Part shown: in pieces, positions 2,951-22,964 of the stretch
Layout: each line of letters opens with the position of its first letter
Numbering within the stretch: the first letter of the stretch is position 1
Origin: Marsupella aquatica
Taxonomy: Eukaryota; Plantae; Marchantiophyta
DNA: 64,000 bases
Assembly: GCA_973895155.1 (NCBI GenBank)
Contig: OZ316898.1
Span: forward strand, 5,071,079 to 5,135,078
Direction of reading: 5' to 3'
Notes under the pieces: model-generated
Seen by the model: only the letters and a program-made list of their open reading frames with translations
Databases searched by the model: none
Told to the model about the DNA's origin: nothing
Made by a program: the position numbers and the translations under genes

Positions 2951-5900
2951 TAGTCTCTTATTGTGTTCCTCTTTCCCCTATCCTGCATTTCTTTATTTGA
3001 GAATGCTCTTCCTTGGTCTTGATCCTTTCCTCTTCCCACTCCAGTAGAATTTTGCCATCTTGGAAATGTATCTCCCTTCCATCCACACTTCCCAATCCTT
3101 CTAATCATGGCCTAACCAAATTCCTGTCCCTTGCTACATTCCCTACCTCCAACTGGAATCAGGCGCTCTTCCTATTCTAGCCTACAATGTACATGTACTT
3201 CCTCCTAATGTAAACACACCCCTCATTATTGTTGTTGTTAAGTTGTTGTTATTGATGATCTTACTTGGCAACAATTTTTAAAGTACTCCCAGCTTTGCCA
3301 CGTGACTCTAACTGCCATTTAATTTCTAATGGGTTTGCTCCACCAATATCTCCTGTAGCTCTGGCCACTCCTAGATTCTGACACTCCTTTTGTGAGTTTG
3401 GTTTTTGAAATTATCTTGGCCCAACACAAAGTGCATGTTAGGAGGGTGCCTTGGTATTAATGTGAATTTCCTTGTCGATGTTTCCAATTGTCAGTTCAAT
3501 TAAGACCAGCATAATAGATGTTTACAAAGTGATTGCCAATTATTTGGATAGGTCATTAAAAAAATGATTGAGGGGTATAAAAATAGAAAATTGCCAACTA
3601 GTTTGGAAGCCCCCTAGTCCTGCATGTAACAAATGTTTTGCTTGAGATTCCCAACATCGGTTGGAGTTATAAAAATTATGTGGTAAAGCAAGGGAAATAA
3701 TATATGTATTCTTGGGGTGGGGGAGACGATTAGTGTTGGATTTAGGGCAACATGTATGATAATGTGGGTGGGAGGTTAGAGAAAGGGCACATGAAATGTG
3801 GATTGGAAAGGAGGGAAGGAATTCGTGGATAAGGTCAGGTTATTGGGTGGTGTGAAAACCATGCAAGGCTCATGGCAGTTGGGCATGGAAATGATCAGAG
3901 GTAGGTTCCAGGCTGGCACATGTACATGGTCAGGAATTTAATTATTATAGAGTGAGGCAGGCAATCTTGAACTTACGTGATGTAGGGTTCATTTTGAAAG
4001 GTGGAGGGTGAAGAGAGAGCATTTTGGGAGATGGATTTTGGGAGGAGGATGACAAGTTAGAAAGGAGGATGACAAGTTAGAAGGTGCAAAGCCTGCGTTG
4101 TACATTGTGTGAGAGTTGAAAGGCAAAGAGATGGAGAGAAGAGGAGATAGGGAAGAGGGTAGGGATTGTTTTCTTTTCTCTTTGAAGACGTCCCCCCATT
4201 TTTCATTTGTATTTTGCAATGAATTTATCTGGCAGAATATTCCCCCTTCCCCTTGTTCTTGGTTCTAAATATACTATTAATAAAAAAATCTGAGGCGTGC
4301 TCCAAGCACTTTAAAGCCAGCTCATGAAGGCATTGGCCCAGATAAAGCATTTCCTCTTTTTTAATAGAGCTCAAAGGCAATAAGAGGGCGAGACTTGTTA
4401 TGTTTGTTGTGAGAGTTGAAAGGTACGGAGAGAGAGAGAAGAGGAGATAGGGTTTGCTTTTCTTTCTTTCTTTATTACAGCTCAAACGCAATAAGAGGGG
4501 AAGACTCGTTTTCTTTGCCTTTTGTGAGGAGGCAACCACATTAGGTGAAGAGATTGATGTTGTCTTTGGTCATTCTGTTGAGGAGGAAACGCACTCATAA
4601 GGGAGGGACGGAGAGATAGAGAATAGTTTACATCCACGTTGAGTCAAGGTTGGGAAGGATTGGGAAGACTAGGCGATCATGAAGTAAGAGAGTTAGTTAG
4701 GGGGGATTGATTTGAGATAGAGATAGAGAGAATTGATTTTGGGTATTTCTTTGGAGCAAGGTGAAGGGGGAACATTAGGGTCAAAGAAGAGATCGATTTT
4801 GGACATCTCAATCGTGAGGTGGGCGATTGTGCGAGGGAGAAAGGGGGGCTTCGTTGATTGATGATCATGGTGATCATTTCATCCCTAGGCTAGACAAGTT
4901 AGTAATAAGGGGAGGCCGGAGGGGGCAAGGGAGAGAGGGACATTGATTTCTGTCGTTCATTTATATCGTCACTAGGGTAAACTAGTGAGGGGACAGAGAA
5001 GTGTGTGACATTGATTGAGCTCGTGTATGTGTGCGATGTCGTGAGGGAAGGGAACAGTGTGAGGTAGAGATTGTCGATTTGGGTTGTTCCCCATTCTCTT
5101 GGGGCAAATGGGCATACATGTTGCCCAGTGAGAGGTGGTACTTTAGTATCCATACGTGATCTTGGTGGTCTTGCTTGTAACGTTGGCGTTGAGTCCTGCT
5201 TTGTTGTCTTACATGATTGCATCATTGTCCTGTTTAGCAAAACTGTAATAAGGGAAAGGAGGTGAGCTCAGATCAGATCGGACTCTACGCGACCATCGTG
5301 TTGCTTGAAGGCGAGTTGGGGTTATTACAATAGCAAGTAAGTGGTTGCTGGAGTTTTGGACTTGCCATGATTGTGGACCAAATTTTTATTTCACGTGAGC
5401 CAAAGTTTGAAAGGGAGGGAGGGAGGGATTGCATTGTCACTGGAGTGTTACGTTACGTTACTGACTCGAGAGATGTGTTAACTTGTGTCGTAAAGAGTTG
5501 GTGGTGGGTTTGGTGGGGTGGCCTATCTTTTTTGTGTTTTGGGTATGTTTTCGTCTATTCGTTCGCAACTACAATAGTAGGTTTTGAATGAAGCCTTTTT
5601 CTCGAAGCTCTGCGCAGATATCTGAGCTCTATTAATTATCTTTCTGTCTGGCTTTCAAGTCGTTCGCAACGTGGTCGACGCATTTTCTCGAGCTCCACCC
5701 AAAGAAATCTGTCGCGTGCGTTTTTCTTCTCCCTGCGGACAAGGGCTTGTCCCTGCAGAGGGAGGGAGGGAGGGACGGACGGACGGACGGACAACGCTTT
5801 TTGGAAGGGAGAGAGCCCTCATCACTTCGCTCGAGAATAACGACGAGGACGTATTATTTCTCGAGCACGGTACGTGAAAGTTGATTTTTATTATTAGCGC

Positions 5901-6603: not shown

Positions 6604-9600
6604 ATGATCTTGGGCTGTGAGGGACTGGCCGACTATCACTGTGGGCTCCATAGCTTGGAGGTTCCTGTGACTAGTGGCACCGGGCTGCAACAGTCTACGT
6701 GCTCATTTGCTGCCCATGTTGGCTCCAAGTGTGGAAGGTGGAAAGCAGAGGATTGGTGCGAGTCAGGAGCTCTGTCTTCGGACGGGACAGGGATTTTTGC
6801 TGAGAATGCTCTGGTGAACAGTCCTGACAAGAAGGAAGAGTTAATTGGCGACAGTAGTGGGTTATGCCCTGATGATAGTGAAGGCATTGCCCTCTATATC
6901 GATCTGCCATGTTCACCCTGTAAGGATTCAGCAGAGTTTGCGTGCATAAAATCCCCCGAGCAATTTTTATTAGCAGAAGGACCAAAGGGAGGCACTGCCG
7001 GGCCAGCATTGGCGACAGGCTCACATGAGCAACTCAAGATGACTAGCCCACCGGAAGTCTCTCAAAAATCCGAATCAAGGAGATCCTCAAGTTTGAGTCT
7101 TCATGTACTGAGGGCTTTGTTGAAGACCGACAATGTGCCTAGGATTAAAAGACTGCGGCAGGTAACTGCTATTGATCAGAATCCAGAAAGTGCCTCTTAC
7201 ATGCTTAAGAAACCTGAAATATTGCCGAACTTGAAAATGTCTACAACACCAGTAAAAGATGGATTGGCGGAGAGTGTACAAGGCAAAGACGTAAAGGCAG
7301 GGCTAGCTGAGTCTAATTTTATGAAGGACTCAGGTGGTGATCAACATAGAAATTGCTGTCAAGGGGAATCTCCTTGTTTGATTGTAGAAAAGACTGAATC
7401 AAAGATTCCTTTAAATCTAGGAACACACGCGTTGAGGGCTCTGATCGAGGCCGACGATGTCCAGAAATTGAAGAGGCGCCGGTTGACAACTCCTGCAGAT
7501 TTAGCTTTTGTCAAGGATTCGAAGGATGTTTTACATGGAAATTCTCCAGACTTTGTGAGTAGGCAATCCAGTGATCTCCCTCTGGCAAAGGAAACCGAAT
7601 GCTCGGAAGAGTCCTTGCCAAGCTCGGACGCAGATGGACTTCCGGTCCGTAGAACCTCAGCTCAGAGTGACATTGCACAAAGTACCATGGACAACACAGG
7701 ATCTGGGGACTCCACCTCAGACGTTGCTTCAAGTGGGCTACTCAAGGGTAAGAGTGATACTAATAGTGATTCGAGTGAATCACCATCGCATTCCCATGAC
7801 AGAGAAACTTTAGATAAGTACATGACTCGGCCTCCTAGACTTTCTTCTGGAGGTTCTATAGGTGCCTTCTGTTCAAAGAAGAAAGAATGGTTAGGTCAGC
7901 ATCATGGTGGTAATAAAGGGGAAAGCGATAGTGGACAGGATAAGAGTTTTGCTGGGAATGTGGGAAAATGTTATCGATCAGCTATCGACAAGCGCCCTGC
8001 TGCACCGCATCCCGGTTTCGTTGGTGATGGAGCGAATGTGCAACTCTGCAGGGTCTGTGGAGAAAGAGAAGACGCAACAAGCTCTCTCATTTGTGACTCT
8101 TGTGAGCAGGTTTTTCACATGGGTTGTATAAACGTTCGAATGAAAATCATTCCACGAGTTGATGAGTGGCTCTGCCGACCATGTAAGAGGAAACGGAAGA
8201 TGTGCAGAGAAAGTGAGAACCAAGGTGACTCTGATGCTGGAGAGCCTAAGGATTGGTGGCGGGAAGATTCCCGCATTGGTAGAGTTGAGAGAGAATTATT
8301 ACGTATGAGCAATGGTCGAAGGATGAAAGTGCGGCTTGGACCCAAATTCCAGGCAGATGTTCCAGAGTGGACTGGCATAGTCGATGAGGTTGACCTGGAT
8401 GACAACCTGTGAGCACTTCAACCCCAATCACTTCTTTTAATTGTCAATTGCACGAGTCGAACGAAGAGACTTATTTATGTGGGCCGACTAGACCGTAGTC
8501 ACTGAGAGCACATCTTGTGTGTTTTCCAGTGCAGAAACTTCCTACCGTTTTGGAGAGGAGATTCCTCTCACTAGCGAGGAGAAGCGACTCAAACAAGAGA
8601 CTGCACAATACAATCTAGCGAATGTACGGGCTAAGTTTTTTTCTTGTTCCTCTTACTCCACTTTGGGTTGGATATCAACTACAATGAGTCCTATTCCGTT
8701 GGTTAAACTACTAGAAAATAGCTTCGTTTTCTGTGTAAGGGTCCTGGAGCTCTCTTGTTCTTATGATGGTTGGTTGCCTCTTTTGCAGGATATATGGCCT
8801 AAAGGGTGGTTGCCTGCTATTCAGCTTCCACCAGGCTCGAAAGAAAATTGGATTCAGTGCACTCTACTTTTGTTCGAAGAAGGCGAGATGTGTCTTGACG
8901 GCTCAACTGCAGAAAAAGATATCTTCTGTGGGAAATGGAGAAGGTGTTCTTCCAAAACAGTCCTAGGAACATTCTGAAGTTTCTGAAATCTGAGATGTCT
9001 AGACTTGTGATATGTCTAGACTGTTTTGGAAACTTTCACTCTGAAGGGACGATAACAAGTTTGAGTAGGTGATAGTTCATACAGACGGTGAAATCTAGAT
9101 TCAATTCCAGCTCACATCCAGTCTACCATCGTGTATAATCAGGTCTAGCTAAGACCTTAGTGTTGAAACCTATTATCTCACATGCAAGAAGAGCCTTCCG
9201 TCGATAATTCGAATAAGTGTTGTTGTGGATTTCATTCAATGTGTTTTTTAATCTTGGAATACACTAAGGATCTCCATCCAGATATCACTCTATGCTGGGC
9301 GGGATTTGTTTGGGACTTGTTAGTTAAAGTTTGGTAGTCCGTAATTGTGTACTAGAACATTTTTGGAGGATAATACTAGCCGCAGAAGAGGTCTCATAGT
9401 TGTAAATTTGGTCATGTCGTAACTGACCGTTGAATTTGTTTGCGCTGTTGCGTGGATGCCTAATTTCAGGGCTCCTTTAGGGATAGTGCCAAATGATCAG
9501 TGGGAATGTTCCTGCGCCCTTGTCTGGGATCCTCGGCATGCAGATTGTGCCGTACCCCAGGTCAGTTACTTCGCCTGCAACTTTAGCTTTCCAGCTTGAA

Positions 9601-15125: not shown

Positions 15126-15524
15126 ACAATACTATTATTGAGCATTTTAAGACCATATAATGACCACATCCCTTTGGTCACAGGCATGGTTTGTTATGTT
15201 AAAACCTAAAAGTCAGTAACGGTAGTTTGACCCGGTTCCATGTCCTGCTGCCCCCAACACTCCACAGAGGCTCCCAGATTGTCGGAGCCAAGGGGCTCTA
15301 TTTGGCGTCCATGGCCACCCTCGCCCTCGCCCTCACTCGATCCCGAGCTCCTTCAACGGTGGTCCGGTTACGCTCCGTCGAGTCGACGGTGAACCATGCC
15401 GTCACCAGACTACACAGTAGACTCCCCGGTTTGATGTGACGGGCAACTTGCCGAGTTGCCCGACACGTAAACTCGGCATTTGCCGGCCTGAAATGCTCTC
15501 ATTTGACGCATATTCGTCTTTATT

Positions 15525-16212
15525 CCCCGGCTCGACCCGAACTTCTCCCGGCCCGGCCCGAACTCCTCCCGGCCTCTTCCCGGACCCGGCCCGGCCCCCC
15601 CTACCTCTCGTCACCCGGCCCCGGCCCCGGCTTTACGCCCCGGCTTTAAATCCCGGCCCGACCCGGGTGGAGGAAGGCCCGGGTGGGGGGAGGGAGGAGG
15701 CCCGGCCCGGGTGGAGGGGGGCCCGGGTGGGGGGAGGGAGGAGGCCCGGCCCGGGTGGAGGGGGGCCCGGGTGGGGGGGTGAGGAGGCCCGGGTGGGGGA
15801 AGGGAGGAGGCCCGGCCCGGGTGGGGGGGGTGAGGAGGCCCGGGTGGGGGAAGGGAGGAGGCCCGGCCCGGGTGGAGGGGTGAGGGGGCCCGGGTGGGGG
15901 GGGAGGAGACCGGGTCGGGAGGAGGACGAGGCCCGGGTGGGGGGAGGGAGGAGGGCCGGCCCGGGTGGAGGGAGGCCCGGGGGGAAGGAGGCCCGGGTGG
16001 GGAGGAGGAGGAGGCCCGGGGGGGAGGAGGCCCGGGTGGGGGGGGAAGGAGGCCCGGGTGGGGGGAGGGAGGAGGCCTGGCCCGGGTGGAGGGGGGCCCG
16101 GGGAGGGGGGGGAGGAGGCCGGGTGGGGAGGAGGACGAGGCCCGGGTGGGGGAAGGGAGGAGGGCCGGCCCGGGTGAAGGGAGGGGTGGGAGGAGGGAGG
16201 CCCGGCCTGGGT
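15525..16212. repeat. Left subterminal GC-rich array (ggcccgggtggggg..ggaggag units)
   Basis: Dozens of CCCGG/CCCGGG cores. C-rich at 15525-15660, then G-rich at 15660-16212. Confidence 0.9.
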
Positions 16213-16434
16213 TAAGGGAAGATAAGCCTGGGTTTTAGAGTTATGGATAAACTCAATTGAGATAAGTCATATCTGCTAATTTGGGGTTGTGACGATTTCT
16301 CGCCTATCTAGTATTTCAACCCCGCTAAATATAGAATGTTTTTCCATTCTAAATTGTATAAAACTTTGAGTTTTTCTCATTAGACACACTTCACTAAAAG
16401 TAGAGCACTCTATGTAAAGAGATAGAAAAGACTT

Positions 16435-16830
16435 TTGTGCGCGCGTGCTTGGAGGTTTTACTCGGCATGTGGTAATCCGCATAATAACTTTTTTCTTATC
16501 CCTTAACATTTAGTGGTACTTGTGGGTATTGTGAAACAAATTTTGACAATGTTGACATTCATGTACGCATGTTTGGAGCTAAAGCTTGACATGTGATATT
16601 TTACATGATTATCACTAATTGTCTCATATGTTTTCACTATATCGGCAAATGCTCATTAAATTATAGATATCACATACGTCGGATAGGAATGTTAACAACC
16701 AGAAAACAAAAGAGAACCGCTGTGCGCATGTTTGGAGTTTGACTCGACATGTGATATTTCACAGTAGTTTTTTTTTCTCGTTTTATTGTTGTTACTTCAA
16801 AAGACTAACAAATAATCATTCAATTTTTAT
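16435..16830 (+). promoter_or_regulatory. Left internal inverted-repeat arm with three copies of a ~40-bp motif, upstream of the transposase
   Basis: Consensus gtrcgcatgyttggagttt..ctcgrcatgtgrtattt at ~16441, ~16562 and ~16722. It is the reverse complement of 21470-21860. The regulatory role is inferred. Confidence 0.7.
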
Positions 16831-16893
16831 TAAGTGACTATGTTTAGCGACGTATAAGAAGACACTTTGTGTGTAAAGTTCTTGTTTTCGATC

Positions 16894-19752
16894 ATGTCTT
16901 CCGAAGAAGATGAGTCGGGCAACTCATCAGCTCATTCTACTCCTGTTAGGCACGGTGGAAATCACAATCGAGATCGTAGTGCAAAATTTTCCCCAGTGTG
17001 GAAATATTTTGAACGATGTGATACGCCGTCAGCGTGTAATGATATTAATCGTATATATCGAAGATGCAAATTTTGCAAGAAATATACAACGCATCATGCA
17101 ACACGAGCAAAAGCACATTTGATGGGAAACATACACAAAGGAGATGCGCCACCTTGCACATGCTTGTATGGAGTTGTTGACTTAGATGACATCAATAGAA
17201 TGTACAATGTCATAAAGGTTGACCCATCCATAAAGTACAAACGAAGTGATGGAAGTCATGTTCTGTTATCCATGAGAGGTCGTAGGTCATATAACCCATC
17301 TTCCAATTCGTAAGCATCAACTCGAGACTCAAATTTTGTTGACCTCGATGAGGATGGAAATATGAGTCATCGAAGTAGAGCATCAAATTTTGCAAACCCA
17401 ATCATGGATGCTTATCAAATTCCAAATAGAGCTCATTTGGATAAGCTGTGGGCCAAAGCTTTTTATTCAAGTGGTATTCCGTTCAATGTGTCGGAGAATC
17501 CTTTCTTCCATGAAGCAGTCACAGAAACCTCGAAAGGGATTGTAAATGGATATTCTCTTCCGGGTATGCGAAATTTGAGAATGAAATTATTGGAGGAGGC
17601 TAGAGTTGATCTTACAAAGGACATGACAAAAACAATGAAGGAGGCAAAACCTTTTGGATATTCCCTTTCATCCGATGGATGGGAAAATATCTGAAGGGAA
17701 CCTTTGATGAATGTCATGTTGTTGAGTTCAAAAGGAGATTTCTTTTTGGATAGTTGGAACGCTGCACAAGCCGACAAGAAAGATGGGAAGTATCTTGGTG
17801 ACATGTGGTTAAAATACATAGATGATATTGGCGCCGATCACATCATACAAATTGTTACTGATGGGGCGCCTGCAAATCGTGTAGCAGGTGAAGAGATAGT
17901 CATGAAAAAATATCCGCATGTGACATGGAGTTGGTGTGTTGCTCACGTTTTTAATTTGTTGCTAGAAGACATGTGTGGCCACAAGAATGTAGTGCTAGAT
18001 GAGGGGAAAAAAAATCCATTCAAAATGATTTTTAAGCACTTGAGATGGATAGTTAAAGCAGTTACATCATCACAAAAGTTGTCTGCAATATTTGTGAGGA
18101 AATCTGGGGACAAGAAGTTGTTAAATCCAAATGCAACGAGATTTGCAACAAATTTTTTAATGGCGCAGAGAGCATTGGAGCTAAGAGGAGCTTTACAACA
18201 AATGGTCATTGATGACAAGTGGCAATCCTATCGTGATCGCCTGCCAGTTCGACCAAAGTCACAGGGGCATATGACGAGGGGAAAGGCAGACGAACTTAAA
18301 TCGTGGATACAGCAAGATACATTTTGGGCTCAAGTAAAATCTACAGTTGCTTTTTTCCTGCCGTTGGTAAAGATGTTGCGAGAATTCGATGGAGTTTCAC
18401 CACAGTCTCCTTGGCTATATTGGAGCTTGAAAAAAGGAATAGCTAAACTGGAGGCGAGCATGGAGGGTTGTACATTAGTAACAGATTACTTAAAACCAAA
18501 GATAATGAAAGTGTATATGGATCGACAAAATTCACTTACTACTGATTTCATGTTAGCAGCAGCATATCTGAATCCTCAATTTTTCTTCGATGAAGATGAA
18601 GATGTGGTAGGAGATGCAGAACTGTATAGAGGCTTCAATGATTACGTTCGTAGATATGCAGAACACAAGGTGAAGGCAGGAATCAACCATGATCGAGATG
18701 TGACGACACTTATTTCTGACATCCAAATGCAGGCATTTGAGGCTCAAAAAAATTTGCCAAATTCATCGGTTGCAATTAGAGGAGCACAATCGAATATTGG
18801 GAAATTAAGTCCAGGAGAGTGGTGGCATTTGTATGGAGCTGATTACGCGGAGCTAAGATTGATGGCGAGAAGAATCACGCATCAACAAATGTGTGCATCT
18901 TCATGCGAATGAAATTGGATTTCGTATGGCTTTATCCATTCAAAAAGCCGTAATAGGTTGACCAATGATCGGACAAAAGACTTGGTTTTTGTATTCACAA
19001 ATTCGAGGGTGCAAAAAGGGCTCACAAAGGTGAGAAACCCTCATACGTCTATGTATAGATGATATGAAGAAAGAACAATAACAAATGATGGCCCGAGGCC
19101 TACTTCCATAGAAGGATGTCACACTGAACAACATGGTGTTACATGTGCGGCTCTTGGAGAGGATGATGTGGAGGATTTTGATACAATTGATGACGCAGAT
19201 GAGGCTTTGCAAGGATTATCATTACACAATGATAGTCACATGTTGACTCGTATTCCACCAGATACTGAAATAAGTGATGTCGGAGAATGGGAAGATGAAA
19301 TGGATTTAATGATGTTCCCTACAATCGATGAGTCTCAAATTCAGGATGACGAGGACTACTCATTTGATGCAAACTTTGTAGTGCCTTCCCAACCAAACCC
19401 ATCCTTCACATACCCAACATTGAATCTACAAAATGATGTCCAAGCAAGTACTTCATACTTATTTCAACGACGAGGTGCTGCATCGGAGCTCTGTCCTGAG
19501 AGAACAACACCAACTTTGTTTGCGCAACCTGATGATGCACAGTGGGGACAACATGCTTCTCCAGCACAAAATATGTATGAAAGGCAGAACATGACAAATC
19601 CATACACATCAAGCATACATGCCCGTGTTGGGGCATTTCAAGAATATCATAGCGCAGATCCGGTCCAATGGATGACAAGACAATTTCAATTTGATCGACA
19701 GTTGCAAGAAAATGAGAACAATAACACAAGGCACTTTTTGTCACAACCTTGA
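16894..19752 (+). pseudogene. hAT transposase (BED finger, DUF659/RNase H-like core, C-terminal dimerisation domain) with four in-frame stops
   Basis: A single frame carries VWKYFER..RCKFCKK..RAKAHL (BED), SSDGWENI, IIQIVTDGA, CVAHVFNLLLED, NATRFATNF and EWWHLYG..CASSCE*NWISYGFIHSKSRNRL. Stops at 17311, 17692, 18910 and 19060. Confidence 0.93.
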
Positions 19753-19864
19753 CATCTGTTTAGGTATTACATGCTAGTACTATACGACAAACTATGATAT
19801 ACTATGCCGGATTGTGCATGTCCTATGCAATAAAATATGCTATACTAAACATTGAGTGTGCAAT

Positions 19865-21289
19865 CTACTCATTTCGGTTCTCATTGTCTTGCGCTTCTGC
19901 TTTCACCTCTGCCAGTTGCTGACAACGACGATGGCGACGAATAGATTGTTTTTGATACGCAACTGCTTTCTCTGTAGGGGTGGGCCACATTCGATTTTGT
20001 GGTAATGTGCATTGTGACTTGTGTTTGGACAACCCAAAATCACATATTCCTACATAAACTCTAATTGCCAAATCATCCCCGTGATCAAAGTGAAGAAGGA
20101 TGTTCCCAAAATGAAGATCACAATGGAAACGATCGTGTGCATGCAAATATTGCAAGGTCTCCAATAGAGCCATAGCAATCCCCAAACGATGTTCCAAAAA
20201 GAGTTTCTTTTCGGATATGAATGTCACATCAACCTCAGAAGTGGATTGTGTCTTCCCTTTGCTCTTACTCCATTTCCCACATTTATCTATGAAACTTCCC
20301 AAGTCACCTCCATTGTAATGGTCATAGATAAGTTTCGGTGGATCTTCGATAGTCATTGCCAAGGCCCCAATTATTCCTTTGTGATTCAAACCTCCCATGA
20401 GCACTTCTTGTAAAGCATCTGTTCGTCTCTTGTGCCGGTCTCCATCCTTAAATCGTTTTGCAACCAGTGTTGCATTTCGAGGAATCAATGGGCAATCCAA
20501 TATATGACATATGAACACATGTCCTTGGATGCCGCTTCCAATGCGATGCAAATTCGATACTTGCTCCCTCCTCAAGAAATGAATACTCCTGACCATGAGA
20601 ACAACTCGTGATGGACGCGTTCCTCTATCTGCAACCTCCACGCCAATCTCTCCAAACTGCACGACCTTGCTCGCATATTTGACATTACTCTCCGATTTGG
20701 CCATTGCTAACTCTTTGCTCCATTTAGCTAGCAAATCTCTTCTATGTGTGTATAGCCCAGGAACTCCAAGCATGACGGCCCCAGCCTCATCCAAATTGGA
20801 TTCCAACTTGTCCCAAAGATTCACCGCAAAATTCAACGCCAAATGTTCAACAAATCCACCCGGCTTCTCAAAATCACTTATTAAGGAAGCAATTTCATCT
20901 CGGGTTATGTCCTCTTCTTTCTCCACAATCTCACGCATGCAACGTCCCATGTCATTTAAAAGGTTTTTGTAACCCTCTGCTCCATGCATAGCATATTTCC
21001 TCTCAAAGCCATCCTGCTCATACTGTGCTGGCAAAGTGTAGGGATATAGAATCTTTTTCCAAATTGCAACTAACACATGTTGCCTTCTCTCTTTCAATGC
21101 AGCACCAATTGCTCCTCCTCTATGTTTCCGTTTCCCTAAGATTTTACCATGTTTACAAATTTCTAAGGTTTTGTGAGCATTCCTTAGAGCATTGAGAGCA
21201 TGAGGATCTGGTTGGTATCCCTCGTTTAGCATGGTCTTCATTGCCTCAAAAAGTTTCATATACTCTACACTCACATTTGCAGCGGCCAT
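19865..21289 (-). CDS. Transposon-borne non-RD protein kinase-like protein (long uncharacterised N-terminus; kinase appears truncated after DFG)
   Basis: Uninterrupted ORF, likely start MAAANV at 21289. Gly-loop IGSGIQGHV, VAK lysine, alphaC LQE, catalytic loop HCDLHFGNILL and ICDFGLSK are present. No APE motif or subdomains IX-XI are seen. Confidence 0.82.
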   Translation of the reverse strand: MAAANVSVEYMKLFEAMKTMLNEGYQPDPHALNALRNAHKTLEICKHGKILGKRKHRGGAIGAALKERRQHVLVAIWKKILYPYTLPAQYEQDGFERKYAMHGAEGYKNLLNDMGRCMREIVEKEEDITRDEIASLISDFEKPGGFVEHLALNFAVNLWDKLESNLDEAGAVMLGVPGLYTHRRDLLAKWSKELAMAKSESNVKYASKVVQFGEIGVEVADRGTRPSRVVLMVRSIHFLRREQVSNLHRIGSGIQGHVFICHILDCPLIPRNATLVAKRFKDGDRHKRRTDALQEVLMGGLNHKGIIGALAMTIEDPPKLIYDHYNGGDLGSFIDKCGKWSKSKGKTQSTSEVDVTFISEKKLFLEHRLGIAMALLETLQYLHAHDRFHCDLHFGNILLHFDHGDDLAIRVYVGICDFGLSKHKSQCTLPQNRMWPTPTEKAVAYQKQSIRRHRRCQQLAEVKAEAQDNENRNE

Positions 21290-21469
21290 GTTCTCAAGTA
21301 ACCACAACAAGTTGTAGGACAAAGAAAAGGCGCTTACGGAGTGTGTTGGCTGCTTGCCGAGGGTATGGATGATGCAAGTACAATAAAGCTGGATCAAGAA
21401 TCCTGAAATATCATTTCACACTTTGTGTTGGTACCAATAATACCCAAGCAATGAAATTTTAATATTTGT

Positions 21470-21860
21470 TCAATTTTTTATTCGTTTGTTTAGTACTTTG
21501 AAAGTAACAACGATGAGGGGGAAAGATAACTATGTGAAATACCACATGCCAAGCCGAAACTCCAAGCATGCGCACAAAATATGTCTTTTCCATCAAGTTG
21601 TTACATTCCTATTCCAATCTATGTGAAACCTATAGTTTAGATGTCATTTGTAAATGTTGTGAGAATATTTACAAGGAATCGAGATATCCATGCAAAATAC
21701 CACATGCCGAGCGGAAACTCCAAGCATGCGTACATGAAAATCTCTATCCTAAAAAATACTCCACTCAATTCACAAATCACACTAAACTGTTAAGGCGATA
21801 TTAGGTTCTCTCATACGAAATACCACATGCCAAGCATAAGCTCCAAGCATGCGCATACGT
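21470..21860 (-). promoter_or_regulatory. Right internal inverted-repeat arm with three copies of the same motif, upstream of the kinase
   Basis: aaataccacatgcc(a/g)agc..aactccaagcatgcg(c/t)a at ~21537, ~21695 and ~21818. The spacer sequences also align with the left arm. Confidence 0.7.
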
Positions 21861-22089
21861 GAGAACACTAATATCCCTCCAAATTAAAACTAAATGTTAA
21901 AGTCATACATGACAAAGCATAGCAAAAAAAAGACCGAAAATAATTCAAAAACGAATGAACTAAACTCAAAACAAAGCAAAACATAAGCAAAAGCAAGAAA
22001 AACTTACCAAAGGTCTCTCCTACAAAACAAGCAAACTTAGTAATGAGAAGTGACTAATGAGAGAAAGTGAGGAGACCTCCTCACTTTAT

Positions 22090-22600
22090 AGGCCCGGTCC
22101 CGGTCTGCCCCCCCCACCTCGTCAGCCGACCCCGGGTGGCCGAGCCCGATCCCCCCCGGCGGCTGCCCTCCTCTCGCGTGACCTAACCCTAAAGTCCCCC
22201 CCGGCCCGGCCCGGCCCGGCCCACCCCACCCCCGCCCGACCCGGGCCCACTCGGGCGGGGGTGGGCCGGGGGGCTTTAGGGACCGGGGCGGGGCTTTAGG
22301 GACCGGGGCGGGGGGGCGGGGGGGGGGGGCGGCTTTAGGGTCCGGGCCGGGAGGGGGGGGCTTTAGGGTCCGGGCCGGGAGGGGGGGCTTTAGGCTCCGG
22401 GCCGGGAGAGGGGGGGGGGGGCCTTTAGGGTCCGGGCCGGGGGAGGTTTAGGGTCCGGGGTCGGGAGGATGAAGGATCCGGGGTCTGGGCCGGGGGGGTT
22501 TAGGGTCCGGGGCCGGGAGTACTCAGGCCGGGACCGGATTTACTCGGGCCGGGACCGGATGATGCCGACCGGGAGAGACCGGGTGTCGGCTTGCCGGTTG
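22090..22600. repeat. Right subterminal GC-rich array containing TTTAGGG units
   Basis: ctttaggg(t/a)ccggg units at about 22275, 22295, 22334, 22362, 22424, 22447 and 22499, a variant at 22389, and ccctaaa at 22187. Confidence 0.9.
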
Positions 22601-22964
22601 ACGGCCTTAAAACGGCCTATTTGCCGGGCAAGTCCAAACCGGGGTAGACTCACTGCACCGCAGTAGACACGGTGCACCACAGTAGACGCAGTGCCCTCTT
22701 GTTCAGCAAACAGTGGGTGAAGCTTTTGTTCATTCTTCTGCAGCTTTCTCATGGAGAAGAAGTCCGGCGCCCCCTTCTCTCTCTTCCTCTCGCACTCGTG
22801 TACATCTCGCTCGCTCGTATCACTGAAATTGATGCCCCCTGCTGATCTCTTCCGAGTCTTGGTCACTGCTGCACGCTCTGTTTCAGTGTGCCGTTCATTG
22901 AACCATTCACTTTGGACTCTCTGGAGGTTTGCGGGCGGTAGGAGGCGAACGGCGGGCTTCGACA

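Follow-up and report, generated by a model that had tools for sequence, protein, structure and literature searches.

Mirrored arrays of a conserved stem-loop ahead of both genes of a decayed liverwort-type hAT element: a putative cis-acting RNA module

Transposase binds the subterminal repeats of Ac (AAACGG hexamers) and En/Spm (12-bp TNPA motifs), and in both elements these repeats partly coincide with the 5' leader or with the promoter of the transposase gene. Structured cis-acting RNAs within an element's own transcript are represented by TAR and RRE of retroviruses and by the leader stem-loops of IS200 and IS10. MuDR of the maize Mutator system contains the convergent genes mudrA and mudrB, which are driven from two TIRs of about 215 bp (PMC3440606). 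The VANC targets of Arabidopsis VANDAL elements are tandem repeats restricted to the non-coding DNA of one family and possibly recognised by an element protein (PMC5735166, PMC10398659).

The present study deals with a window of 64,000 nucleotides from Marsupella aquatica (contig OZ316898.1), which contains a decayed liverwort-type hAT element with two converging genes. Like MuDR, it has a transposase and a second gene, each behind an inverted-repeat arm with regulatory sequence (PMC3440606). However, MuDR carries its promoters and the MURA-binding site within the TIRs, whereas the mirrored part in the window lies 0.8-1 kb inside the element and leaves out the core promoter; its arrays are hairpins downstream of a TATA box and a splice donor, and the superfamily is hAT instead of Mutator. 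With Ac and En/Spm it has in common that a motif recurs in non-coding DNA close to either end, in inverted arrangement from one end to the other. The motifs of Ac and En/Spm measure 6-12 bp, lie no more than about 250 bp from the ends, are found in either orientation and lack covariation, whereas the unit in the window is 60 nt long, has one orientation per arm, lies far from the ends and pairs in a strand-specific manner, and a TTGCC-type motif occupies the classical position. The arrays resemble VANC targets in being family-restricted tandem non-coding repeats that an element protein possibly recognises. VANC targets, however, are short duplex motifs which diverge fast between related elements, whereas here the core is kept across deeply diverged elements, the signal is base pairing and a VANC-like gene is absent. 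Like TAR/RRE and the IS200/IS10 leaders, the units are conserved stem-loops in which bulge and loop bases are also conserved, and the presumed reader is a protein or the processing machinery. None of those RNAs is a tandem array duplicated in two convergent units, however, and the hairpin of the window, part of a predicted transcript, matches no Rfam family.

The complete element spans 15425-22643 and is flanked by a perfect 8-bp target duplication. Its ends and genes are as follows.

15417-15424, no strand: left 8-bp target-site duplication GTAGACTC, with the same 8-mer at 22644-22651, immediately outside the TIRs
15425-15529, plus strand: left TIR (CCCGGTTTGA...) with subterminal DNA of about 100 bp; the Calypogeia element L002 shows 79% identity at its left end (6852-6953)
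15530-16215, no strand: left GC-rich minisatellite within the element, GC 0.64, repeat families D1-D4
16895-19752, plus strand: decayed hAT transposase gene with BED-like finger, DUF659 and hAT dimerisation region
19865-21291, minus strand: kinase cargo gene remnant (Pfam PK_Tyr_Ser-Thr, 5e-14)
22091-22560, no strand: right GC-rich minisatellite with telomere-like TTTAGGG units, within the element
22581-22643, minus strand: right TIR with subterminal DNA; L002 shows 77% identity at its right end (18741-18804)
22644-22651, no strand: right 8-bp target-site duplication GTAGACTC, matching the left copy

The transposase gene was matched by Pfam DUF659 (4e-20), with Dimer_Tnp_hAT and zf-BED sub-threshold. 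It shows 78% DNA identity to L002 8410-10923 and has in-frame stops at 17311-17313 and about 17695, places where L002 reads through. The kinase gene has suffered an internal deletion (junction 19950-19992) that joins the kinase domain, broken off at its middle, to the tail of the RING-protein gene; window 19992-20867 corresponds to L002 15809-16684, and window 19885-19950 to L002 13303-13368. A search of the element's proteins found no RNA-binding domain, only a sub-threshold zf-U1/zf-BED-like finger. Repeated TTGCC(G/C)/GGCAA motifs in the left subterminal DNA (15425-15529) are classical candidate sites for hAT transposase binding. GC-rich blocks equivalent to those of the window lie inside the element ends of the relatives L001, L002, L004, L005 and L006. 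It had been considered in the initial annotation that the arms might be the TIRs of a separate nested element. This was rejected because the outer TIRs are the ones flanked by the perfect 8-bp target-site duplication, and because in the relatives, too, the GC-rich satellites are internal.

The two arms and their hairpins are given below, with the score under covariance model R1 and the RNA fold energy.

16421-16860, plus strand: left arm with three hairpin units and homologous spacers; the transposase start codon (16895) lies downstream of it (alignment A1, shuffle test, covariance-model matches)
16430-16489, plus strand: hairpin L1 (outer), 63.2 bits, -19.7 kcal/mol, z = -2.1
16554-16613, plus strand: hairpin L2 (middle), 72.9 bits, -18.6 kcal/mol, z = -3.5
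16713-16771, plus strand: hairpin L3 (inner), 72.9 bits, -21.4 kcal/mol, z = -4.1
21437-21874, minus strand: right arm with three hairpin units and homologous spacers; the kinase start codon (21291) lies downstream of it (same evidence as the left arm)
21525-21584, minus strand: hairpin R1 (inner), the weakest unit, 67.7 bits, -14.2 kcal/mol, z = -0.7
21683-21742, minus strand: hairpin R2 (middle), 81.0 bits, -23.2 kcal/mol, z = -3.9
21806-21865, minus strand: hairpin R3 (outer), 65.7 bits, -25.8 kcal/mol, z = -4.9

The initial annotation had described three motif copies per arm with mirrored spacing, homology extending into the spacers, and a motif better conserved than the spacers, and all of this was borne out. 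Local alignment of the left arm with the reverse-complemented right arm scored 127, as against 14.0 +/- 1.6 for dinucleotide shuffles (z = 72), and the three spacer pairs tested alone gave z = 5.9, 12.5 and 2.6. The half-motif GCGCATGYTTGGAG, with up to two mismatches, occurs at 16441, 16565 and 16724 on the plus strand and at 21560, 21718 and 21841 on the minus strand, so that the spacing is 124/159 bp on the left and 158/123 bp on the right. Outside the arms it has one stray match in 64 kb; chance would give 0.69 matches in all, and seven matches were reached in none of 100 shuffles. The second half-motif, GGCATGTGGTATTT, has six matches in the window, every one within the arms (0.46 expected). 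The outermost hairpins start 1005 bp (left, from 15425) and 778 bp (right, from 22643) inside the element ends, in agreement with the distance of 0.8-1 kb noted earlier.

The arrays are a property of the family. Twelve arms with 2-7 motif copies each were found in nine loci of relatives, from the Calypogeia fissa genome and environmental contigs, and these matches include loci left out of covariance-model building. The arrays are always sense-oriented, lying upstream of the transposase in four elements and of the kinase in eight. The arrangement of arms ahead of both genes holds in every relative found. In a negative control, 80 unrelated contigs containing the 14-mer gave no covariance-model match. 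The right arm of the window is 77% identical to that of L002 (17678-17885). The claim that the kinase is part of the element also stood: relatives carry eight kinase-side arms, the cargo unit downstream of these being kinase plus RING, and in one relative, with a kinase only 42% identical to that of the window, this kinase is still placed opposite a convergent hAT transposase. Across elements the units group with others of their side (left or right) and not with those of their own element, which indicates that both copies have been kept separately since before the elements diverged and supports the proposed old duplication.

The motif forms a hairpin of about 60 nt with 21 base pairs, 15 of which show compensatory changes (RNAalifold, 27 units). 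A sequence-variable lower stem of about 11 bp is followed by a 3' bulge of 6 nt (ATATTT) and by an upper stem of 8 + 4 bp that contains a TG bulge, both bulges being conserved; the loop is mostly a UUCG-type tetraloop, and some units have an additional basal stem, GAGGA/TCCTC. The earlier observation of two CATG-type cores, spaced by about 20 bp, is correct: each core is one strand of the upper stem. The 5' half of this stem hardly varies in sequence, which a double-stranded DNA site could explain equally well. Unpaired bulge and loop bases rank among the most conserved columns, which fits recognition of a folded shape. In the 27 units pairing holds in 93.2% of cells, as against 28-51% with partners slid, and the covariation score of 0.535 (0.276 for shuffles) was reached in none of 500 shuffles. 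An independent set of 14 units gave 93.8% and 0.515 (0.268 for shuffles), again reached in 0 of 500. The A4 alignment was fitted to the covariance model and is biased toward structure. G·T cells outnumber A·C cells by 70 to 8 in the first set and 46 to 1 in the independent set (116 to 9 in total), counts that exceed the number of independent events, as tandem or recent copies are numerous among the units. Better folding of the sense strand was seen in 26 of 27 units and 13 of 13 independent ones (39 of 40), with mean energies of -20.6 kcal/mol sense and -12.3 antisense, and with -14.45 and -5.82 for the consensus fold. The G/T excess is limited to the hairpins, and the two strands of the spacers are symmetric in this respect; this speaks against a mutational bias of the whole region.

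On this basis we favour, with moderate confidence, the reading that the arms are a shared cis-acting RNA stem-loop array of putative function and not a double-stranded promoter motif. That the units are instead double-stranded DNA sites acting on transposition, chromatin or transcription, with the palindrome reflecting dimeric binding or cruciform extrusion, is unlikely. They could be extra subterminal sites bound by the transposase through its BED-like finger, or self-recognition sites for an element-encoded regulator, like VANC targets or those of TnpA/AtMu1-type transposase-activators. The arrays are inverted between the ends as subterminal repeats are, the 14-nt core is nearly invariant among elements with proteins 42-59% identical, and it is documented that transposon proteins bind tandem non-coding repeats of their own element and that transposases can be sequence-specific activators (PMC5735166, PMC10398659, bioRxiv 10.64898/2026.08.24.746577). 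However, a dimeric DNA-binding protein would not select base-pair covariation in a freely varying lower stem, and the 13:1 excess of G·T over A·C and the sense/antisense energy gap are meaningless in duplex DNA. The single orientation per arm and the distance of 0.8-1 kb from the ends, with separate short TTGCC-type motifs adjoining the TIRs in the classical position, also speak against DNA sites.

It is somewhat less probable that the hairpins are Dicer substrates in a leader intron, as miRNA-like or hairpin-siRNA precursors that limit the element or act on host targets. A stable sense-specific hairpin with a stem of about 21-24 bp, basally extended in some units, and a tandem, possibly intronic layout resembling polycistronic precursors would suit such a role. 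Yet conservation peaks in the loop, bulges and upper stem while the lower stem is free, whereas in a miRNA precursor the mature arm would be conserved and the loop free. For processing by plant DCL1 such a stem is short, and the Rfam search with the hairpin motif gave no match, miRNA families included.

The sequence around the arrays points to a leader in which they may be transcribed. Two features of the kinase unit are relevant.

21403-22007, minus strand: predicted first (leader) intron of the kinase unit, with GTAAGT donor at 22007-22002 and TTTCAG acceptor at 21408-21403, enclosing the three right-arm hairpins
22084-22090, minus strand: TATA-like box of the kinase unit, TATAAAG, at the border between GC-rich and AT-rich DNA

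Equivalent TATA-like boxes are present in the kinase-side arms of L001, L002, L005 and L006 and in the L002 left arm, and a GTAAGT-type donor, a hexamer expected by chance about 0.6 times per 300 nt, lies at the homologous position in the same four kinase-side arms. Box and consensus donor together stand upstream of the array in all five intact arms of the kinase side and also in the left arm of L002, and a TTTCAG|G acceptor is kept downstream of it in 6 of 6 kinase arms (alignment A5). The kinase-side arrays therefore probably sit in a leader intron. The box and donor pair is absent from the left arms of the window and of L001, both decayed copies.

These signals bear on the proposal that the arms are a duplicated promoter or binding cassette, which stood in part: the module is old and precedes both genes, but the core promoter is not duplicated, as homology between the TATA/exon-1 regions of the two sides is undetectable (z = 1.5-2.3). 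An enhancer or promoter cassette bound by host B3/RY-type factors upstream of both start sites is very unlikely. The equal relative orientation of the arms ahead of both genes and the conserved CATG-containing cores would agree with it. However, the cores read CATGCT, CATGCG or CATGTG, and the canonical RY core CATGCA occurs at no consensus position. The conserved TATA-like box and donor are upstream of the arrays instead of downstream, and TATAAG 40 bp before the transposase ATG of the window is not conserved in relatives. Strand-specific hairpins with covariation are not predicted by a double-stranded cassette and would be left unexplained. That the arrays are functionless palindromic tandem repeats (from duplication or slippage, with some structure-templated repair) or nested-element ends is hardly credible: copy number does shift by tandem duplication (units of about 179 bp repeated five times in L001) and the window copy is a dead element, but core and pairing are kept separately on each side across the diverged elements while spacers decay, and all relatives have the identical nested layout.

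The arms are best read as two copies of a single non-coding module, ancient and maintained independently of each other, which occupy the 5' leaders of two convergent units, the transposase on the plus strand and the kinase(+RING) cargo on the minus strand. The hairpin is read from the sense strand, and action at the RNA level is therefore most likely. We infer that transcription would start at the TATA-like box at the GC-rich/AT-rich boundary, and that a short non-coding exon would end at the GTAAGT-type donor. The array would then lie within the next AT-rich leader intron, or in the leader itself if the intron is unspliced. To our knowledge, no conserved cis-acting stem-loop RNA is known for a eukaryotic cut-and-paste transposon, and a stem-loop array of this type has no earlier description for this kind of transposon. 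In such an element the stem-loops could serve as docking sites for one RNA-binding factor, which would link the pre-mRNAs of transposase and cargo in their processing or output.

The two arms are inverted homologous regions, 16421-16860 (+) ahead of the transposase and 21437-21874 (-) ahead of the kinase. The motif was located at 16441, 16565 and 16724 (+) and at 21560-21573, 21718-21731 and 21841-21854 (-), and the spacing is mirrored (124/159 on the left versus 158/123 on the right) as the initial annotation had described. Each of its two half-motifs occurs six times in the arms, with one stray first-half match at 3431 in the 64-kb window; 0.69 and 0.46 matches per 64 kb would be expected by chance, and the observed count was matched by no shuffle. 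Homology of the arms, also proposed there, was borne out by local alignment of the left arm with the reverse complement of the right, which scored 127 where dinucleotide shuffles reached 14.0 +/- 1.6 (z = 72). Homology extends to the spacers taken by themselves (z = 5.9, 12.5 and 2.6), and these are less conserved than the motif in the arm comparison, both as claimed. Only the array with its spacers is shared between left and right, in a stretch that opens ~10 bp ahead of the outer hairpin and closes ~60-90 bp past the inner one, and no homology was detectable between the TATA/exon-1 regions of the two sides (z = 1.5-2.3). A core-promoter resemblance between sides seen by eye (AACTCCATT...) failed the shuffle test (z < 2.5). 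The array units are ~60 nt long, three per arm, in a single orientation per arm and 778-1005 bp from the element ends.

The true boundaries of the element that holds the arms are now known to be 15425-22643. A perfect 8-bp TSD, GTAGACTC, was found at 15417-15424 and 22644-22651, and the TIR CCCGGTTTG is present at both ends, as in hAT elements. The window transposase matches DUF659 (4e-20, Pfam), as is typical of the plant clade of hAT transposases; the hAT dimerisation domain Dimer_Tnp_hAT was below threshold in the window (E = 0.0095) and reached 5.8e-11 in the homologue from the relative L001. Inward from each end come the TIR, ~60-100 bp of directly adjoining DNA with repeated TTGCC/GGCAA motifs, a GC-rich minisatellite and then the AT-rich arm. 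The minisatellites, which separate subterminal DNA from arms, are:

15530-16215, GC-rich minisatellite of the left side
22091-22560, GC-rich minisatellite of the right side

Every family member has on both sides such a fast-evolving minisatellite, rich in G- or C-runs, between the subterminal DNA and the promoter. Its GC content is 0.61-0.73 per 500-bp window in the relatives L001 and L002, and equivalent blocks also exist in L005 and L006. The repeat units vary between copies, so that position and composition are conserved and not sequence; insulator, CpG-island-like promoter or G-quadruplex are candidate roles.

Judged from its sequence, the copy in the window is dead, a derivative formed by deletion. 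Stops interrupt its transposase frame at 17311-17313 and ~17695, where a Calypogeia relative reads through. At the junction 19950-19992 the counterpart of L002 13368-15809 (~2.4 kb) is missing, a loss that takes in the kinase domain's end, one middle ORF and the greater part of a RING-H2 ORF. The reading frame at 19865-21397 (-) is a deletion chimera in which the mid-kinase domain runs on, in the same frame, into the final ~20 codons of the RING-H2 gene; because of this deletion the window kinase ORF has no visible C-lobe.

The transposase ORF has its closest relatives, at 72% identity, in Calypogeia fissa, a leafy liverwort, so that the source genome is of liverwort type. Elements L001 (= L003) and L002 of C. 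fissa were retrieved via the transposase, and L004 and L005 (C. fissa) together with L006, L007, L128 and L129 (environmental or run assemblies) via the kinase and the transposase N-terminus. In full-length relatives the left half reads TIR, GC-rich satellite, array and rightward transposase, and the right half reads leftward RING-H2 protein, leftward kinase, array in reverse complement, GC-rich satellite and TIR. In L007 the kinase is only 42% identical to that of the window, yet hairpins precede it, a RING protein follows it and the C-terminus of a hAT transposase converges on it; this locus keeps leader signals as well as the convergent gene and thus reads as genomic or unspliced DNA. Since the relatives including L007 keep the layout of hairpins, kinase, RING protein and transposase, the kinase is a genuine passenger throughout the family, and the initial annotation was right in regarding it as integral to the element. 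The cargo is a two-gene unit maintained over deep divergence:

L001 15824-19560 (-), two-gene cargo unit
L002 13289-16647 (-), two-gene cargo unit
L006 1377-5040, two-gene cargo unit
L007 287-4294, two-gene cargo unit

The first cargo gene encodes a kinase with an N-terminal region of ~300 aa, for which Pfam gave nothing and the Atlas no usable match; the second encodes a coiled-coil protein of ~620 aa with a RING-H2 finger at its end.

Twenty-seven units from the window, L001 and L002 were aligned (alignment A3), and RNAalifold found in them a single stem-loop of 21 pairs with compensatory changes in 15 of the 21. In A3, 93.2% of the cells are paired, as compared to 28-51% when the partners are slid by 1-3 columns, and covariation is 0.535 versus 0.276 +/- 0.016 for shuffles (0/500 reach it) and 0.08-0.16 for slid partners. 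The lower stems differ by positional class and each is self-complementary: CGTACG-type in the outer units, CCATGTG/CACATGG-type in the middle units and CTTTTGTG/CATAAAAG-type in the inner units. An unpaired TG bulge, an ATATTT bulge and a loop that is mostly TTCG are among the best-conserved columns. All six window units take the common fold, with RNA z-scores of -0.7 to -4.9, and in four of them no shuffle of 200 was equally stable. A covariance model built from A3 found the six window units and nothing else in 64 kb. On loci on which it was not trained it found 19 units, all in sense orientation upstream of a kinase or transposase ORF, and in 80 unrelated metagenome contigs with the 14-mer core, taken as a negative control, it found no match, the 14-mers being chance single occurrences. 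The 14 units from L004-L007 are 93.8% paired with covariation of 0.515 against 0.268 for shuffles (0/500), in an alignment that is fitted to the model and so leans towards structure. The evidence as a whole is comparative sequence analysis of 46 units from nine loci, many of the units being recent tandem or sister copies. These results demonstrate a conserved hairpin, whose pairs are compensated beyond the controls as expected of a structured RNA. A search of Rfam across 15300-22800 returned no match at E <= 1.

The hairpins are also strand-biased. In A3 there are 70 G·T cells and only 8 A·C cells, and in an independent set 46 and 1 (116 and 9 in total); as in structured RNA, G·U is tolerated and A·C is avoided. 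Folding energy is lower on the sense strand in 26/27 and 13/13 units (39/40), the means for sense and antisense being -20.6 and -12.3 kcal/mol in A3 and -23.4 and -13.8 kcal/mol in the independent set, and the consensus fold gives -14.45 for sense and -5.82 for antisense. The base composition of the hairpins is G 0.27, C 0.185, T 0.34 and A 0.21, whereas the spacers between them are strand-symmetric (A 0.36, T 0.36, C 0.15, G 0.13). Regional mutational strand bias was rejected as an unlikely source of the G·T excess because the G+T excess is restricted to the hairpins. In the upper stem the 5' strand is near-invariant and the 3' strand changes mainly A/G and C/T, keeping Watson-Crick or wobble pairs. 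This pattern together with the strand bias carries the signature of a single-stranded structure, most simply RNA, and its reading direction would be that of the neighbouring gene.

Comparison between elements revealed that the units group by side. Left middle units of L001 and L002 are 0.90 identical and the window R2 unit (right arm) is 0.85-0.87 identical to right units of L001, while left and right units inside one element are only 0.78-0.80 identical. This clustering rules out that the arms within an element evolve in concert, and it places the arm duplication before the divergence of these elements. Although the copies have not been homogenised against each other, core and pairing persist in each of them, which points to selection acting on each array separately. 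The core 14-mer is kept in elements whose kinases are 42-59% identical. The arrays vary from 2 to 7 units, changing by tandem duplication, and in the right arms of the window, L001 and L002 the outer pair keeps its spacing of ~124 bp.

On the kinase side, a TATA-like box was found at the boundary of GC-rich and AT-rich DNA in the window, L001, L002, L005 and L006, followed after 77-207 nt and before the first hairpin by a consensus donor (GTAAGT or GTATGT). Across kinase-side arms these TATA-to-donor regions are homologous (z = 6-26), and their donors line up. An alignment of the region past the last hairpin (A5) has a TTTCAG/G acceptor (cut before G) in 6/6 kinase arms, beyond which come a brief conserved stretch, another GTAAGT and the start codon. 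In the window the sequence signals are:

22090-22084 (-), TATA box of the kinase unit
22007-22002 (-), donor of the kinase unit
21408-21403 (-), acceptor of the kinase unit

On the transposase side both TATA box and donor were seen only in L002 (TATAAAA at 7309, CAG/GTAAGC at 7404, cut before G), the one intact copy on which the promoter of this side rests, and the pair is absent from the left arms of the window and L001. A TATAAG 40 bp before the window transposase ATG was rejected as promoter, being not conserved in relatives. Because TATA-like box, donor and acceptor signals flank the arrays, we infer that the arrays probably belong to a leader intron in each of the two units; a donor-like hexamer by itself is expected by chance ~0.6 times per 300 nt. 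The C. fissa locus L004 is, at 8500-8860, a rearranged derivative with foreign DNA inserted in the GC-rich block, and its purine-rich first exon is joined directly to a hairpin unit, so that the donor and the intron start are gone. In most arms, telo-box-like TTTAGGG(TT)/AACCCTAAA units, which resemble telomere repeats, precede the TATA-like box by 59-163 nt:

window 22183-22197 and 22260-22520, telo-box-like units
L002 7250-7262, telo-box-like units
L001 ~21170 (-), telo-box-like units
L004, L005 and L006, telo-box-like units upstream of the TATA-like boxes

Their density is 6.8 per kb in the right GC-rich satellite and 0.3 per kb elsewhere in the window, and the real promoter may include them.

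We give about even chances to the explanation that the motif forms a cis-acting RNA stem-loop array common to the leaders, probably the first introns, of the transposase and kinase units. Transcription would run through the arrays, splicing would follow, and a trans-acting factor reading the stem-loops would couple the processing or output of both units. That the arrays are bound as double-stranded DNA, by the transposase or by a regulator of the VANC/TnpA kind, is unlikely: the invariant core and the inverted layout fit, but the covariation in a stem of free sequence, the G·T/A·C asymmetry and the distance from the ends are left unexplained, and TTGCC motifs separately hold the classical position. 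It is quite doubtful that the hairpins are Dicer substrates. The stem fits such a role but the conservation pattern does not, since a plant miRNA precursor conserves one ~21-nt arm, lets its loop vary and has a long lower stem, whereas here conservation falls on loop, bulges and upper stem, it is the lower stem that varies, and the stem comes to ~21-24 bp in total. The promoter cassette that the initial annotation had inferred, bound by transcription factors of the RY/B3 type, is very improbable, as the position relative to TATA box and donor contradicts it and the consensus has CATGCT (CATGCG on the opposite strand) and CATGTG in place of the RY core CATGCA(TG). Neutral repeats or a nested element with the arms as its TIRs can hardly be entertained: the former is contradicted by the separate long-term conservation and the latter is ruled out by the perfect TSD at the outer TIRs and by the TIR, GC-satellite and array layout common to relatives.

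A stem-loop array of RNA could in turn serve as docking site for a protein encoded by the element, a reading that we hold to be rather unlikely. Candidate proteins are the kinase/RING cargo and the C2H2-type finger (C-x2-C...H-x5-H) at the N-terminus of the transposase:

window 16990-17140 (+), N-terminal finger of the transposase
L002 8440-8580, N-terminal finger of the transposase

The DNA-binding zf-BED, a domain expected at the N-terminus of hAT transposases, scored 11.5-14.1 bits on this finger against a cut-off of 20.6 (Pfam), and zf-U1, which binds duplex RNA, was equally weak and sub-threshold on the same residues; the finger as RNA reader is an unsupported lead. A Pfam search of the cargo for RNA-binding domains found only the kinase and RING-H2 domains.

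Among known systems MuDR, whose two TIRs carry the promoters of convergent mudrA and mudrB (PMC3440606), is the closest in how the layout works, with mirrored sequence ahead of two convergent genes. However, MuDR has core promoter and TSS inside the inverted repeats, and the mirrored part of this element is internal and has no core promoter. Subterminal repeats of hAT and CACTA elements and the target repeats of VANC (PMC5735166, PMC10398659) are likewise element-specific non-coding repeats, but differ from the arrays in size, position, orientation and divergence rate. The hAT repeats, which the element's transposase binds and which transposition needs in cis, are ~6-12 bp, in many copies and both orientations within a few hundred bp of the ends, unlike the arrays; VANC targets are a short duplex tandem motif that diverges rapidly between sister elements, whereas the array core is conserved. 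Full-text literature search found nothing on this hAT family or on hairpin arrays in hAT leaders. We file the stem-loop arrays as a variant of transposon cis-regulatory repeats that has no Rfam counterpart.

DNA transposons are thought to control themselves via double-stranded sites such as TIRs, subterminal repeats and VANC/TnpA targets. The conserved signal here is base pairing of the sense strand, kept separately in both leaders despite protein divergence (~40-50% identity). Self-recognition by VANC/TnpA takes place at the DNA level, and docking on RNA would be its RNA-level counterpart. If that docking occurs, transcripts of the family would be recognised by the family itself, expression of transposase and cargo would be coupled at the RNA level, and this would be the first conserved structured RNA described in a eukaryotic cut-and-paste transposon. 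If the arrays are an RNA element at all, they would add an unrecorded RNA motif to bryophyte genomes and provide a testable handle, a 60-nt hairpin for which compensatory mutants are defined, on how the transposase is co-ordinated with a captured kinase and RING module.
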